From Hyphochytrium catenoides (Eukaryota > Protista > Hyphochytriomycota), in NCBI GenBank assembly GCA_900088475.1, contig FLMG01001160.1, forward strand, positions 62,001-126,000: a DNA stretch of 64,000 bases. The letters run 5' to 3'. Below, piece after piece: positions 1-7,777 of the stretch (the stretch's first letter is position 1; every line of letters starts with the position of its first letter). The translations under genes were made by a program, and so were the position numbers. The notes beneath the pieces were generated by a model. The model worked only from the letters and a program-made list of their open reading frames with translations. It was not told the DNA's origin and did not search any database.

Positions 1-384
1 GAGAGGATCCCACGTTATTTGACCCAGAGTGAAGCAGTAAGCGGCGGCAATGCAAGTGAAAGCTCTAAGAGGGACAGCGCTCGGTCCTGAAGGCTGTCCC
101 GCATGAGATGCACATAGGGTTCTGCTGTACTCCTCCATTCTCAGTCGGATGGCATCCTCTCCTTATAGCAGTTTAACTCATTTAGGTCTGTCGCTTAGCT
201 GCAAATGTTCCCATCCTAGTAAGAAGATGATGGATATCACTTAGGTCGTGCTGATGTAAAGGTAACGTCTCGTACTGCCTCTGCTTGTACTGGTGGTGTA
301 AGCTGCATGTGCCCGATAGATCTCTGTTATATACTTCCTAGTCAGCAAAATAATATTGAAACATGCTTTGACTGCGACAAGCGA

Positions 385-3300
385 CTATTCGAGTTTACTA
401 TGGCTTGACATCATCCTAAGGAGTGACCTCGTGCTGGTTGATAGCCGCTGCTTAACATCCGTCACTAGCCGATCGACGTCATTGCGAGATAGATCTGTCT
501 CCGTCCGCCTAGATGATGAGGAATCTCTGGAGAGTAGGTCCCAGAAGGTTCCTTTAGCATCTCTCAGGTCCGAAAACGTGCCTTCTTCTACAAGCATCCC
601 GTCTTTGAAGACAAGTATCTTGTCGGCTTCAGCAGTGGTATGCAGTCGATGGGTGACCTGTGATTGAAGCGTATCTTAGCTGTGGGCCTTGAGTATACAT
701 TATCATCTGACCAGGCAACACGTACCGAGATCAAGGTGATCTTCCTTTCCTTGCAGAGCTTACGCACGGAGGACAGAATCTCGCTCTCGGTCTCAGGGTC
801 GAGAGCACTAGTTGCCTGGAATGGACAATGATCAGATTCGCATCTTTCTAGAAAACATAAAGGCGGGGATAACTAACCTCGTCGAGTAAAAGTATTGATG
901 GCTTTCTGCAGAGCGCTCTTGCAAGGCAGATCCGCTGTGCTTGGCCGCCGCTGATACTGACTTTTGCGTGCTGGCCGAGCACTGTGTTGAAGCCCTCATC
1001 CAGAGAGCTCACGAACTTGTCGCATTCCGCCAGCTTTGCAGCCTCAATGCAATCATCGTCCGTCGCAGTCACATTTCCATAACGAATATTCTCGAGAATG
1101 GTTCCGTTAAGTAACATCGTCTCTTGAAAGACGATTCCCACCTGCTTGAGGTAACTCTGATAGTCATAGTCATTCAAAGGGACGTCATCCACCCGGATGA
1201 CGCCTCCATTGGGTTCCCGAAACCTCAGCAAAAGGTTTAGGATTGTGCTCTTTCCGCCACCACTAGTACCACAGACACAAACGAAGGTACCTGCGGGTAC
1301 GAGGAAATTGGCGTGGTTGATGGTGTACTTGCTTTGCAGTGGCTGGTATTTGAAAGTTACGTCCTCAAAGCGGATGCCGGACGTAAGCGGAGCTGATGGC
1401 ATCCTAACAGCTCGAGTTGAATCCTTCATTCCTTGAGTATGAACATTGCTCTGTCGAGCAAGGAGGTTGTCAATCTTTTGCAGGCTTCCGGAGTTACTGA
1501 TTGCCCACCGCATGAAGCCACCGATGTTTGCAACGGGATTGATCATCCCGTTGTATAGCTGCACCATCGCTGTGAAAGAGCCAATGCTGAGGTCACCATC
1601 CGCCGAAGCTAAGGCCAAGGCAGCAGTCAGTAGTGCTATGAACAAGTTCATTCCAGAAGTCACTTCAATCTGAACGATGTTAGACCAAAGCTGACTCTTC
1701 ATAGTTGTTTGACGAAGAAGCTCGCTGCTCTTTTCAAACTTGTTTATAAAGTATGACTGCAATCCGTAAGCTCTGATAGCTTTCTGGCAAGTGATCCCGT
1801 TCTGGAACTCCGCTGCGAGATAGGCATTGTTGGTGACGTAGTCCTTGGACAAATTCGCAGCCTTAACACGTGGACCAACGATGAGGATGACCAGCATGAA
1901 GGATATCCCAACAAAGCCCGCTATCCACTGTCTGTAGAACACGTAGAGAATGGAAAAGATGACGGTGGCCGCGGGATTGATAAGATTCCAGACGATCGAA
2001 ATCCATAGCGTTGATACACGTTGAATGTCGCTGTTAAAAATGTTATTCAGCTCCCCCTCGGTATACAAAGAAAAGAACTCCGTAGGACTTGAGAGAGTAG
2101 TCTGTACGAGGTCCATTTGTAACTTTTTGATACCAGTTGATATGACTGCAGACTGTGCGTAGCCTAGCGCATTATTCCCTAGGATGTTGGGAATACATAG
2201 TACCAGCAGAAAGATGATATTTGTATGAACCGAAGAAGTGAGGCCATCTTTGAGACCATCTACAATGCCTTGTAGTGCGTAAGCTTGGGCAGGAGCCACT
2301 GCGGCTAGAATGATGCTTGAAAGGGTGGCCAGTAACACATTTCTTTTCTGGGTTGACCAGTGGCTTGCTGTGCTTTGAATCACCTCCAACGGCCCATACG
2401 CCATCTGGGCGTCGTGAACCACCATGGACTGCAGGTGCGCTATCATCTCAGACGCTGTCATCTTGGCAGGGCGGTGGATAAGGGCAGTAGCTAAGAATTC
2501 GAGATACTCTGGCATGCTTATCATACCACTCGTTTTCCCGCTAACTATTTCTAGGTCTCGATGAAGCACAAGCGCTTCGTTCAACGTACAGAAGGGAAAA
2601 GATCGGATAGCTTGCTGTACTGAGTCTACCGCAATCTGTAGCTCAGGCCCTGCATTCATACTACTCAACAGCAGCTGTGAATAACGCTGTGAGGCAGGTC
2701 TGGATAGGAGTCTACCACAGCAGATCATACTATGGACTGCCAGCAGAGCGAGGTCGACCTCATCTAGACCACTCTGAGCCGCAAAAGCAACTCTCACTGC
2801 CACGACGCCCACGATGGCCATCACAGCTGCCAGATCAATCAAATTTGTCTTCGATTTCTGAAAAAATTTGCCGAGCGCTCCCATCCGACAAAGCTGCTCA
2901 GCGGCCATGAATGTTGACAAACCAACTGCAACACACTGCAGGAAAAGGTCAGAGAGCTAGTTCGTTTTCTACATAAGGTACTGCCTTACCACTTCCCATA
3001 GCCAGGACGTCTGCAGAGCTGCGGCGCCTGAAGCGCTCTCAACAAACATACGTGCAAGAAGGACTGCCACTTGAAGCAGAAGCACAATGGAGCCGAGCTT
3101 GTAGACCCAGCCATTGACCCATCGAAGGCCATCTCGAGCTGACGAAAAGTCCTGCTTTTGCTCTTCTGATAGTCCTTTCTCCATTGTGCCGAGTTTCTCA
3201 GGACCTAGGATTGGAGGGACTGACATTGACCCAGACATAGCTAGATCATCCATCGCGTACCACGACTTCAAGAGCTTCAGGAGGAGTTATTTTTCGTAAT

Positions 3301-3434
3301 CAAGCAGCATCACTTGGTGTGGACTCAGCTCTATTCACCTTCTGGATTGCCCGACACACTCGTGGACTCAATTGTTCCTCAGTACCAGGGCCCTATCAAC
3401 TTCGCCTCGAAAAGACTTGGCGCCACCTTACCAT
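385..3434 (-). CDS. ABCB-type half ABC transporter (TMD-NBD) with an N-terminal 4-TM extension; multi-exon
   Basis: Walker A GTSGGGKST, Q-loop VFQE, signature ISGGQAQR, Walker B/D-loop ILLLDE|ATSALD and H-loop VTHRL are restored by GT-AG introns at 816-877 and 658-725. Phase-0 intron 2936-2989 joins the upstream ORF (WEV|CVAVG). The 5' exons (ATG 3434, introns ~3393-3431 and ~3275-3338) are less certain. Confidence 0.9.
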
Positions 3435-4343
3435 CAAAGTTTCCAACAGATAGGCGACATCAACGATGAACCCCAACTACGGCAAGAGCTGAGAGGCTTC
3501 ACGCCCAGACAAGCACATCAACGTAGAAAGGGCAGGGCGAAGCGGTGAAGTGCGTGCTCCTGCAAGACAGGATAAGGGGGAGGATCGCCGCACTGTCGGA
3601 GGCACGCTCAGTGATGAAGCGAAGGAGAGAGAGAGAGAAAGCAGAAGAGATGTGAACAGAGTTTGCACTTTGATGGTAAGTCCAGTGTGAAACGGACCTT
3701 GTGGTCCGAATCCGTCTAAAGCCGGAAATAAAGCGTAAAACACGTTCTAAAACGGGATATTCCTTATGGGTTTCCATGCACACACTACAAGGGGAGCTCT
3801 GAAGCTAAGTCCGTAAAGATGTAGCTAGCTACCAGTACCGACGCTCAGACATGCCCAACTCATGTTTATATCCACCACTATAAACTGCTACTGTGAGTTC
3901 AATTACGGAGTTTCTTAGGTCCATTCATTACCCTCCTTGATCGCATCGTCACCAATGATTCCTATTCCGGAACCAAAGCCTATCATTTATCTCTCACGGT
4001 TCCAAAAAGGGTGATCAATTAAGCGGCAGGGACATCCCGCTATCGGAGATTAGAGCGTTGACCTCTTCTGAAGCTTGGACAGAGATCCCGTAGAGATTTG
4101 TCAGTTGCCGTCACTGAGCATAAGTGGGAAGACAAACAGGTGAGCCGCAACCTACAGGTGGCATCTGTAAGAAGCAGAGTTTGCTTGGAAAAAAGAGTTG
4201 TAGAGAGTGGTGTGCTTGGCAAAGATTCTGAAAGAGCGGACGCCAAAGGCCTTAGAGCTGCGGAGATCGCATATTTGTGCCACATGGCTTGACTCCAAAG
4301 TGACGGACGGCATTGCTCACCCCGCGTCTTTGTAGGAAGAACC

Positions 4344-4669
4344 ATGACCAATCTCCAGAACACGCACGCAAGGACCCACAGCAAGGGCGGTCGCCGATGC
4401 CGTACCTGCAACAACCACTATGGTAGGTGACGCTTAACAGATCACTTCATTGAACATGGTTCTCATCTAGGTGTTGCTTAGCTATTATCCGGAAGTACAA
4501 CATCAACATGTGCCGTCAGTGCTTCCGCTCGTACGCACCTGCTATCGGCTTTGTCAAGGTGAGTCTACTCGCTGACTTTTCTTGATGCATGATTGCTAAC
4601 ATTAGCTCTTGACGCCCCTATTTTGACCTCGGCACTTCCCTCATTGTTGCTCCCATACAGTACAAGTAA
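4344..4669 (+). CDS. RPS29: 40S ribosomal protein S29 (uS14), 3 exons, 54 aa
   Basis: Exons 4344-4422, 4482-4558 and 4661-4669 give [54 protein letters not shown], with CxxC...CRQCFR zinc ligands. Missed by the ORF track. Confidence 0.95.
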
Positions 4670-4886
4670 GTAGCACACAGCTGCCTACTAGCTCAGAATG
4701 CAGGATGCCCACTGAGCTCTAAAAAGCTCAGAAGTTCGAGTACGCTCAAAGACGGACTGTGTAATAAAGTTTTTATTGCGCAAGTTTGACGGCAGAAGCG
4801 GCATCTTGTCTCGTACAACCCCATTCGAATCTCCGACTTGTATTCTACTGAGTCTAACTCTCGCTGAAATCTCTTTTTACTGTATA

Positions 4887-7777
4887 TCACTTCTTAGCGG
4901 TGGCTGCACGGACTCGGTGCATCAACTCCTGAATCTTGCTTGGGTCTTTCTTCCCTGGCAACTCTTCTAAACTCCCTGAAACGTCTATTCCCCATGGCGA
5001 GGCTTCTTGAATGACCTTGTCGACGTTGTCTACACTAATTCCGCCTGTGGTGCTTGAGGTAAGCTGGGTACCATCAGGGTCTAGCGGCTCCCATAGCATG
5101 GGTTACCTGCAACTATCACCGGAAGCCCCTTGTCGGCCAATGTCTTGGCGACTTGCCAGTTAAATGTCTTCCCTGTGCCGCCTTGGTTGCAAAGGCGAAC
5201 GGTTTAGTTCAGAATCGCCCACCAGCTTTCAGGATACAATTTAAAGTATCGCTTACCTTTTTGACCATTGACAGCGGTATCGAGCAGGACTGCGACTGTC
5301 CAGCCTGTCATAGAAAGTAAGACGGGGCATATTCATTTTACTAGCCTTCACCCGCACATGCCAAGTAGAGGAAAGAGACAATGTAGAGTGAAAGCTGTGA
5401 CTTGCCTGCTCTTATGTTACTCAAAACCTCTCCGGCTAAGTTGCCGCTGTCCGCCGGAATGTGCTCAACCTTGATGGCCGGGACTTTTAGCTGATGCGCA
5501 AACTCATACGCTGCAAGGGAAGAAGAACGTTAACCTGTTATCATTAGCTAAAGAGAAAGGGGCAGAGGTAGATAGAAAAGGAGAAGCGTAGAGGTCCGTA
5601 CACTCGTCTCCATGCAGTTGCACGAGGTCAATGCCTGCGCTGTCGATAACGGAGTTTATAAATCCCAGTGAGTGGTTTTGGAAGACTCCAACGACTACCG
5701 GCTTCTTTTTGCTCTGTAGCATGTTCGCACTGTCGAGAAGGAGGCTAGATGAGTTTGACGCAGCATTTTGAAGGCCTTGTAAAGAGAAGAAGGGATAGCT
5801 GCTTGTCATAGAATATAAAGGTGAAAGGAGCTTGGGGACAGGAGCAACAGTTTCCCTGAACAAATGAGAGACAAGACGCAACTTTCGCCACTTCTAGTGG
5901 GCTGGCACGTACCAACTCTGAAACCACTCGGTGACATTAACGGCCGGTGTGGGATAGAATTCAGAGAAGTCTATCCGATCCGACCTTTCTCCGAATTTTC
6001 TAACCTCTGTCACTATCTCCTTTGCCTGCTCTGGCGTAACCTTGCGAGGCGATTTCTCTGCAAAAATGAGGCCAATGAAGTCTGCTCCACTTCGAGCAGC
6101 AACCATTGCGTCTTCCGCATTGGTAATTCCACAGATCTTGACAAAAGTCTTGGCCTGTACCGCCACCCCTTTTAATCCCTTAAGACCAGTGGGATTTTGG
6201 TAGATGTACCCCGTAGCGTCAGGAGTCATCGAAAGCACAACTCCACTGGACTCGACAGCTCAGTACCTGGACAGCTAAGTATGGGTCCGCACTTCTCATC
6301 AGGCTCTCACCCACTAGGACACCCCGGCAACCGCAAGAGGTATATTTGATTACGTCCTCCCGAGCCGCAATGCCGCTAAGTGCCATTAGGGCCACTCCCT
6401 CGCGACCTGTAGTATCAGTAAGGGTGAGACAGATGGCCGGCGTTGAAGAAAGGTTTTGGTGAGAAATACGTCTCGCCTTAAGACACTTGTCCTGTTGCGC
6501 TCCCACCCGGGTTGCACGTGCATTCTCTCCTTACGCATTTGAACTGCGGTCTTTTTCTTTATTGTAGGCCCTCTGGATCGCTCTCTTACTGCAGAACTTA
6601 CAGCCTCCATCCACCCCACCGTTTTCCACCTGGGACCATGATATTCTCTCCTACCTAGCAGGCCTCTCTCCTGCAAGATGCTGGCTATCCGGATCGTCCT
6701 ATCCATGTCCACCTGGAAAGTATGCAAATCTCGGTTGTTAACCCCGATAACCTTTGCTCCAGCCTCCAATGCCACTTCTAGTTCTGCTTCGGACACAACT
6801 TCCACCAAAGGCTCCATTCCACGATCTCTTGCAGCCTGCATAGGATTGTTAGCTGCCTCGTCTAAAGGAGCATTGTCCGTTAAGCTTCAACACCTCTTTA
6901 GCGGCCTCTACGCCTCCGTACTACAGCCCATCATCCACTTCTAAACAATGATATCTCCCTCACCTACCGCTAGCAGCGCACGGAAGGTAGCAGGATCTAG
7001 GATTGAGAGCATGAGAAGGACTGTGTCAGCTCCAAAGGCGACCGCCTCTGCAATACATTCGTTAGTTATAGCCAAGCCGGCGTAGAGAGGAGGATGGCAA
7101 CCGACCGTCAAGTTGGTATTCATCTATAATAAAGTCCTTCCTTAGCACTGCCGGTCGCCGTTTATAGCTGGTGATTGCATTCCGAACCTAGAGAGGAGTA
7201 TGAATCAATCTATGCTCGAGGGAATAAGGTCCCACTTTGAGAGAATAACAGAGCGGAATGCGCCTTGCAAGATCAGAGCTCTCTTATTCCGAGCTAAGGG
7301 TTCGCAGGTGTTACCTACCGTAAGCATGTCTTGCAAGGTGCCCTTGAACCACTTGGGCTCCGTCAAGACCGAGATGACGCCGGCACCAGCGTTTGCGTAC
7401 TTGCTTGCAATATCTAGCACAGGGAGGTTGGTAAGCTACGTGGTCCGTTGGACAAAAGAAAGTTTCCACCTGCAGCGTTGGCGTTTGGGGCAATGACTCC
7501 TTTGCTAGGACTGGCTCGCTTGAACTCTGCAGCGATAGCAACTTCAGGAGCTTCCTATGCACCGAACGTCGCCGCACACGCGTCTTGGCGTCAGACTAGC
7601 TTAATCAGCGACAGTTAACGGACATACCTCCCACAGCCGCTCAAACAAGTTCAGCGGCTGTCCGTAGGCTGCCAAGGTGGCACCCGCCAACTTTGCTAGC
7701 TCATGTGTCGAGACCTGTTCCCTTGCATGGTGGACATCCCGCCGCCTCTGCGCGGTTATATCCTCCAAGATCGTCAT
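4887..7777 (-). CDS. trpCF: Bifunctional indole-3-glycerol phosphate synthase / phosphoribosylanthranilate isomerase (TrpC-TrpF fusion), multi-exon
   Basis: Starts [19 protein letters not shown] motifs: [54 protein letters not shown] motifs: [35 protein letters not shown]...KD. Stop at 4887. Confidence 0.93.

Follow-up and report, generated by a model that had tools for sequence, protein, structure and literature searches.

An ABCB-type half transporter of Hyphochytrium catenoides with an N-terminal module probably derived from a voltage-sensor domain

The families known to carry an S1-S4 voltage-sensor domain were covered in full by a 2023 review, and comprise channels, the voltage-sensing phosphatase, SLC9C1 (sNHE) and a protozoan adenylyl cyclase; no ABC protein is among them (PMC10651576). 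The gene described here, from Hyphochytrium catenoides, appears to bring the two kinds of protein together. It lies on the minus strand of a 64,000-nucleotide stretch of contig FLMG01001160.1 (positions 62,001 to 126,000 of the forward strand), which is called the window and supplies the coordinates for all H. catenoides features given below. Its predicted product, the window protein, would combine an ABC half transporter with an N-terminal four-helix membrane module that probably descends from a voltage sensor. Full-text literature searches for combinations of a sensor with an ABC protein returned no description of such a pairing, and a further search, for inventories of oomycete ABC proteins, yielded nothing relevant. 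The first-pass annotation of this DNA had likewise recognized no described family with this architecture, and none was found in the literature searches.

Several described systems offer a comparison. SLC9C1 is a dimeric transporter, not a channel, with an S1-S4 sensor of Ion_trans descent, as the protein discussed here probably is too, and it is among the best matches to the module both in sequence and in structure. However, SLC9C1 is a secondary-active exchanger, its sensor is located C-terminal to the transport domain and is followed by a cyclic-nucleotide-binding domain, and its voltage dependence has been shown experimentally (PMC10651576). In the oomycete-type protein, by comparison, the sensor-like module is N-terminal to a predicted primary-active ABC pump, has two S4 charges and is known from sequence. 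A second comparison is provided by Ci-VSP and TPTE, in which an N-terminal S1-S4 module is also followed by a cytosolic effector that is reached via the end of S4; the sensor of Ci-VSP is the best natural structural match to the module. Unlike the system described here, these proteins have a soluble phosphatase as the effector and a full S4 charge ladder. Hv1 also belongs among the sensor-bearing proteins and consists of the sensor alone. A polybasic stretch, KPRARxFSKKLH, that follows S4 at the membrane-cytosol boundary in most members of the family described below is reminiscent of the lipid-binding linker found in voltage-sensing phosphatases, whereas the window copy is without that stretch and has SRPASQRYSQLLL in its place.

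Among ABC proteins, TAP1/2, ABCB6, ABCB9 and ABCC/SUR have an extra N-terminal helical membrane bundle, transmembrane domain 0 (TMD0), before a type IV exporter core. The usual role of such a bundle is to bind partners or to direct trafficking and not to take part in transport, and, unlike the module proposed here, these bundles are not known to descend from voltage sensors. The S1-S4 domains of the TRP/PKD channels and the two-pore channels (TPCs) are of Ion_trans descent, have few S4 charges and are ligand or structural modules; TPC1, TPC2 and TPC3 are among the structural matches to the module, as PKD2 is among those by sequence profile. These domains, however, are still joined to a pore (S5-S6), whereas no pore is present here and the partner is an ABC pump.

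The explanation favored for the locus, with a probability of about 0.62, is that a sensor-derived and largely static front module has been added to an oomycete ABCB-type pump. The window protein would then be a divergent member of an oomycete family of ABCB-type half transporters (type IV exporters) in which three modules are fused in order: a four-helix membrane bundle with the S1-S4 voltage sensor of Ion_trans channels as its ancestor, a helical linker domain of about 110 residues in the cytosol, and an ABC membrane domain with its ATPase that is predicted to be catalytically intact. Half transporters of this kind presumably act as homodimers. The front module would have kept the inner charge network of a sensor and lost the outer gating charges of S4, and it would most likely be a largely static regulatory or anchoring domain, analogous to TMD0, whose long S4 helix and linker bundle could bias the elbow helix and first transmembrane helix (TM1) of the pump.

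The N-terminal extension of the window protein is 288 residues long and includes four hydrophobic helices, of which S1, S3 and S4 appear as peaks in the hydropathy plot and S2 is weaker. A word-index protein search with residues 89-288 produced no match, and an exhaustive phmmer search with the same residues recovered the representatives of 14 clusters (E 2e-19 to 2e-6), which with few exceptions are ABC half transporters of 900-1060 residues with the same extension. Residues 13-285 were also aligned by BLASTP, colinearly, with residues 46-318 of the homologue P0001 (E 1e-26). As judged from sequence, the extension is the mark of a family of about 35 ABC half transporters, drawn from Saprolegnia, Aphanomyces, Achlya, Thraustotheca, Pythium and Phytophthora as well as from environmental contigs. 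The members with names belong to Saprolegnia parasitica, S. diclina, Aphanomyces astaci, A. invadans, Achlya hypogyna, Thraustotheca clavata and Pythium insidiosum, and their public annotations are "hypothetical" or "ABC superfamily".

When the ABC part of the protein is used for the search, there is a discrete top group of 16 matches (E 1e-126 to 1e-109, 40-44% identity), to which Phytophthora fragariaefolia and P. kernoviae are added as sources; the next match, P0036, has an E-value of 1e-80, and generic ABCB proteins begin at 1e-66. Both N-terminal modules are detected by the family hidden Markov models (HMMs) in all 16 members of the top group. In a maximum-likelihood tree of the ABC part, 25 family rows together with P0036 are separated from the other outgroup rows with support of 100/99, and a group of 24 rows that includes the window protein and leaves out P0036 has support of 92/85. 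The branch leading to the window protein is about eight times the median length, and its exact position in the tree is unsure. Family profiles used for testing the window protein were built without its own row; they detect its S2-S3 region (residues 87-141) at E 1.7e-9, in a single-target comparison, and its linker at E 9e-24. On these comparisons, the window copy belongs to a family found across the oomycetes, within which it is highly divergent. P0036 itself, a protein of 1044 residues from a Logan assembly, has a weakly sensor-like N-terminus (Ion_trans E 0.002, family HMM 23.6 bits) and no match to the family linker domain, and may represent the fusion at an early stage or in a divergent state.

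The evidence for a relationship of this module to voltage sensors comes from the family. An HMM of the S1-S4 region, built from 18 sequences and run against all PDB sequences, produced 96 matches at E<=10, and the best 60 of these 96 are all voltage-sensor proteins, with E-values between 4e-5 and 2e-3 (Cav1.3 at 4e-5, NavPaS at 7e-5, SLC9C1 at 1.7e-4, NavAb/CavAb at 2.4e-4 and PKD2 at 2e-3). The alignments cover S1-S3 in the correct register; the Tyr, Asp/Glu and Arg of the family S2 and the Asp of its S3 are aligned with the NavAb Phe, Glu, Arg and Asp that constitute its charge-transfer centre. A second profile, made from 27 sequences, again had purely sensor proteins among the 60 matches listed, with Ci-VSP added, at a best E-value of 1e-3 compared with 4e-5 for the 18-sequence version. 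Ion_trans (PF00520) is the only Pfam family that recurs, and was detected in 5 of 17 and in 4 of 8 N-termini; scores for the homologues range from 15.5 to 24.1 bits, with a best E-value of 2.3e-5 at 24.1 bits. The position of all Ion_trans scores below the 25-bit cut-off would account for public names that go no further than hypothetical or ABC.

An AlphaFold2 (AF2) model of the N-terminus of P0001, made with the family alignment, has a predicted local distance difference test (pLDDT) value of 81 and consists of four long helices. With this model as the query, Foldseek, in which sequence and shape are scored together, returned NavAb, CavAb or Nav1.7 (chimeras) for all of its top 50 PDB matches (best E 2.3e-4). 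VIA-align superposed residues 1-130 of the model on the Ci-VSP sensor with Z 12.5 and a root-mean-square deviation (rmsd) of 3.0 over 125 aligned residues; further matches were NALCN (Z 12.4), SLC9C1 (Z 11.7, rmsd 2.2), KCNQ2, CatSper and Cav1.2. Feature and shape searches of the ESM Atlas are led by Ion_trans clusters, and a TPTE2-like cluster is also present. On the strength of these profiles and models, the family module is very probably homologous to S1-S4 sensors. The sensor-derived N-terminal module proposed in the first-pass annotation can therefore be retained at the level of the family, and the window protein is linked to that family through the match of its S2-S3 region (E 1.7e-9).

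Several observations weigh against the explanation favored here. No member of the family attains the Ion_trans gathering score of 25 bits, and the window protein has no Ion_trans match even at E<=10; Pfam returns only DUF6631 and TrbC noise for its N-terminus, and a phmmer search of the PDB with the same region gives nothing at E<=10. Its link to voltage sensors, as drawn from these alignments, is transitive via the family, and S2-S3 and the linker are the only parts of it that score against the family profile, because its S1 and S4 are too diverged to score alone. The PDB profile E-values are modest (4e-5 to 1e-3), and the modelled sensor is that of the homologue P0001 rather than that of the window protein. 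Designed four-helix bundles reach sensor-level scores in VIA-align, and for this reason the fold alone is not specific. The one public RNA run gives no transcript across the junction of the first two exons, and the functional role of the module is a matter of inference only.

The equally good match of the P0001 model to designed bundles, together with Ion_trans matches that are all below threshold, is also what might be seen if the resemblance to sensors were due to chance or convergence, in which case the extension would be an unrelated four-helix TMD0 of the TAP, ABCB6/9 or ABCC type with generic bundle packing. Such a chance or convergent resemblance is improbable, however: the listed sequence-profile matches are exclusively sensors, in the right register at the signature residues, and the Foldseek top 50 consists only of Nav/Cav channels. 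No ABC TMD0 is found among the 60 PDB profile matches listed in either search, nor was similarity to one detected by phmmer. Descent from a voltage sensor is accordingly preferred, and the individual helices of the window protein are described in those terms.

All helices are encoded on the minus strand. The S1-like helix (3041-3109, residues 49-71, WVYKLGSIVLLLQVAVLLARMFV) was assigned from hydropathy, alignment and a table of key sites; at the position of the family S1 Asp, the window protein has L60/Q61. The S2-like helix (2873-3001, residues 85-109) spans intron 1 and contains E101 and R105 in an E-x3-R arrangement, and its aromatic site is occupied by M98 (with F97 adjacent), whereas Tyr is found there in the family and Phe in NavAb. 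The profile alignments give the register of this helix relative to NavAb, Cav1.3 and NavPaS. A K-rich cytosolic S2-S3 loop leads into the S3-like helix (2792-2845, residues 119-136), in which D122 and R136 are family-invariant. The S4-like helix (2696-2761, residues 147-168) has R163 and R167 as its sole basic residues, followed by P168. A ladder of at least three Arg/Lys residues at every third position is absent from S4 of the window protein, which has no R-x-x-R, and the key-site table thus agrees with the charge-poor S4 described at first pass. E101, R105 and D122 are present, with M98 at the aromatic site, and the charge-transfer centre was scored as present; in all, the window copy retains E101, R105, D122, R136, R163, R167 and P168. 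As for the S2-S3 motif by which the module was first recognized, its key elements hold (a Glu followed at +4 by Arg in S2, and N-x2-D in S3), but the spacing originally written was loose, the actual pattern being F-x3-E-x3-R-x2-A-x-G-x-FF-x5-N-x2-D-x3-V.

The distribution of charges, with a K-rich S2-S3 loop and outer loops that are acidic or neutral, matches a topology in which the N-terminus is inside. By the positive-inside rule, S4 would end in the cytosol, and this topology fits a chain that would be brought to the cytosolic start of ABC TM1. The extracellular S3-S4 loop of the saprolegnian members has a common insertion of 25-30 residues that ends in N-Q-x-E-x-Y, and this insertion is missing in the Pythium members, P0001, P0015, P0016 and the window protein.

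The whole coding region of this gene, which combines parts resembling a voltage-sensor domain (VSD) and an ABC half transporter, occupies 385..3253 on the minus strand and encodes 894 residues in four exons. Exon 1 (2990-3253) begins with an ATG at 3253 that has an in-frame stop upstream, exon 2 (878-2935) is a single open frame, exon 3 covers 815..726, and exon 4 (657..385) includes the stop codon. The three introns, of 54, 62 and 68 nt, are each GT..AG when 3400..1 of the minus strand is read. Intron 1 (2936-2989, 54 nt, GTAAGG...CTGCAG) is canonical and lies inside S2; it is exactly the intron that had been called from the sequence at first pass, and the five peptide strings quoted at that stage are all present in the spliced translation. 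It cannot be read through because it contains an in-frame TAG, and with its removal the alignment to P0001, P0008 and P0023 continues across S1 and S2. The frame of exon 2 spans S2, S3, S4, the linker and the ABC membrane domain, up to Walker B. Since this exon is one open frame, the DNA itself shows most of the fusion between the N-terminal module and the pump, and only S1 depends on the intron 1 splice. The join between exons 1 and 2 is supported by the colinearity of the spliced protein with its homologues, which begins ahead of S1 and extends to where the ABC domain starts.

An uninterrupted single open reading frame was sought in the S. parasitica gene as independent proof of the fusion, and introns were found instead. 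This gene, SPRG_00289 (L002, KK583189.1, gene at 1501-4890), has several introns, and a single strand carries its sensor, linker and ABC parts in colinear order.

It might be argued that the H. catenoides gene model is an artefact in which exon 1 is not truly joined to the remainder, or that this divergent copy is decaying and non-functional. One public RNA run shares words with the gene; only one 230-nt contig comes from it (1062-1291), which falls in the ATPase region, and the junction of exons 1 and 2 is not covered. The long branch of the window protein and its loss of several family-conserved residues point in the same direction. However, the four exons are open, the splice sites are canonical and all of the ATPase motifs are intact, exon 1 aligns with S1 of the homologues, and the region from S2 to Walker B is contained in one uninterrupted exon, so that an artefact or a decaying gene is very unlikely.

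The ABC exporter membrane domain (1532..2335, residues 289-556, minus strand) matches Pfam ABC_membrane at E 2.3e-25 over profile positions 2-274 of 274. The nucleotide-binding domain and C-terminal tail (385..1318, minus strand) extend across introns 2 and 3, and the corresponding ABC_tran match has an E-value of 3.1e-24; beyond these two Pfam families, nothing significant was found in the window protein. On the same strand are Walker A (GTSGGGKST, 1244-1270), the Q-loop (1121-1135), the signature ISGGQ (941-955), Walker B (ILLLDE, with its Glu, 878-895) and the H-loop (VTHRL, 643-657). The protein therefore has the make-up of ABCB-type (type IV) half transporters, namely a single six-helix ABC_membrane domain and, after it, a single ABC_tran domain in which all catalytic motifs occur. 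The closest solved proteins are ABCB19, ABCB1, ABCB11 and ABCB4, followed by MsbA and Atm1. The identity as an ABCB-type half transporter, also proposed at first pass, is thus supported by Pfam, the motifs and the closest solved relatives. With all of the ATPase motifs present, the window protein looks like a functional ABCB-type half transporter. NCBIfam gives just generic MsbA-like or ABCB matches that are far under their cut-offs and offer no basis for assigning a substrate.

A cytosolic helical linker domain (2336..2656, residues 182-288, minus strand), matched by the family HMM, separates S4 from the ABC membrane domain. It is the best conserved part of the extension, and a family-invariant S-T-x-x-H-W-x-x-Q motif (2348-2374, minus strand) is located in it just before TM1. 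No Pfam family corresponds to this domain. The linker of the window protein itself was modelled with AF2 (pLDDT 78) as a five-helix domain with two short strands, and a Foldseek search of the linker gave a best E-value of 0.35 and no significant known fold. Spidroin N-terminal domains are its best VIA-align neighbours, at Z 6.7-8.1, values that are within the noise quoted for helical bundles, and a kinship with them was rejected.

A stretch within the linker (2492-2557, residues 215-236, minus strand) had been likened at first pass to an EF-hand, and a working EF-hand at this position would imply a pump regulated by Ca2+. The second half of the loop does fit G-x-[IM]-[ST]-x-x-E-[FYL]-x-x-F-L, and in the models a helix-loop-helix unit occurs twice, with short strands in the loops. 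EF-hand clusters of the Atlas are matched by shape with a template modelling (TM) score of 0.47, amid equally good unrelated folds, and the EFhand_Ca_insen cluster is matched by features at 0.91, with recognition under the reliability mark, which is a weak hint. However, Pfam EF-hand families gave no match at E<=1 in any of 17 members, and in a comparison of the linker profile with the PDB, in which a designed protein was matched at E 0.009, the only calcium-binding match was parvalbumin, at E 1.7. Two VIA-align searches with the linker included no EF-hand protein among the 50 matches listed in either, and Foldseek, as stated above, did not go beyond E 0.35. The loop pattern D-x-[DNS]-x-[DENSTG]-G-x-[ILVMC]-x-x-x-[DE] has its ligands at positions 1, 3, 5 and 12, where the window protein has S, K, S and E (SGKTSGMISMPE) and the family consensus has C, R, D and E; positions 1 and 3 are not acidic in either. 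The EF-hand reading thus has no significant support, a Ca2+-regulated pump of this kind being highly improbable, and a linker descended from an EF-hand pair would most likely be insensitive to calcium.

The extent to which the sensor-derived module may still behave as a sensor can be considered from its conserved residues. The inner network of the family consists of the S2 acid, three invariant residues (an Arg in S2, an Asp in S3 and an Arg with which S3 ends) and, four residues apart in the innermost part of S4, an Arg and a Lys that are each at least 90% conserved and are followed by a Pro. In nearly all members the 21-residue S4 segment has two Lys/Arg residues (rarely 3-4) and no R-x-x-R ladder. 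In the P0001 model, S4 is part of a long, continuous helix (residues 104-140) that reaches into the cytosolic domain. Because the S4 gating charges are nearly absent, voltage coupling is less likely; steep voltage sensing by the module is unlikely and classical voltage gating is doubtful, while a weak voltage dependence, or the sensing of something else, is possible as far as the sequences indicate.

If the protein were instead a truly voltage- (or pH-) regulated ABC pump, sensor motion would be passed via the long S4 and the linker, as in SLC9C1 or Ci-VSP. It would be in keeping with such a pump that conservation within the module is highest at the charge-transfer-centre residues, that S4 of the P0001 model enters the cytosolic domain as one long helix, and that the SLC9C1 sensor is among the best sequence and structure matches. 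There is also a potential across the plasma membrane, in which one homologue resides: SPRG_00289, identified from 10 peptides by mass spectrometry, is enriched in the plasma-membrane microdomains of Saprolegnia parasitica, in a proteome that labels it just "ABC transporter" (PMC11302233). However, S4 has just two basic residues, which are at its inner end and spaced by four rather than three, and three family features are missing from the window copy, namely the Asp of S1, the aromatic residue of S2 and the post-S4 polybasic stretch. A pump regulated in this way is thus rather unlikely. It is also unlikely that the family represents the first primary-active (ATP-driven) transporter under the control of a voltage-sensor domain, in the oomycete plasma membrane, with membrane potential, or a ligand or lipid in the sensor crevice, setting the activity of the exporter via the long S4 and a new cytosolic coupling domain. 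A sensor-derived but largely static front module remains the preferred explanation.

Some further observations concern gene copies in the family and the surroundings of the gene in the window. S. parasitica has at least four paralogues (SPRG_00289, 14590, 13766 and 16665). An environmental protein of 928 residues, P0007, consists of the second half of an ABC transporter, followed by a sensor-like module (residues 523-687) and a linker (residues 693-812); it looks like two head-to-tail family genes that were merged by the gene caller, and thus like a tandem duplication. In the window, a multi-exon tryptophan-pathway gene with IGPS and PRAI domains (Pfam; 4887-7600, minus strand) is located just upstream of the start of the ABC gene and on the same strand. 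At 4344-4680 on the plus strand, three short exons, the first ending in CRTCNNHY and the last in YK and a stop codon, were read by eye as what we take to be a ribosomal protein eS29 gene; the 27-residue first exon of this candidate has no Pfam match.

A sensor-derived module on an ABC pump would be a new class of partner for S1-S4 modules, in a pairing that combines known kinds of arrangement, namely the fusions of sensors to other proteins and the ABC pumps that have an additional membrane domain at the N-terminus. Members occur widely among oomycetes, pathogens of fish and of plants among them, and the family is open to ordinary expression and knock-out study because at least one member is a plasma-membrane protein (PMC11302233). 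The fusion may provide a natural test case for the reuse of an S1-S4 bundle that has lost its gating charges, and for the question of whether the membrane potential can modulate transport driven by ATP.

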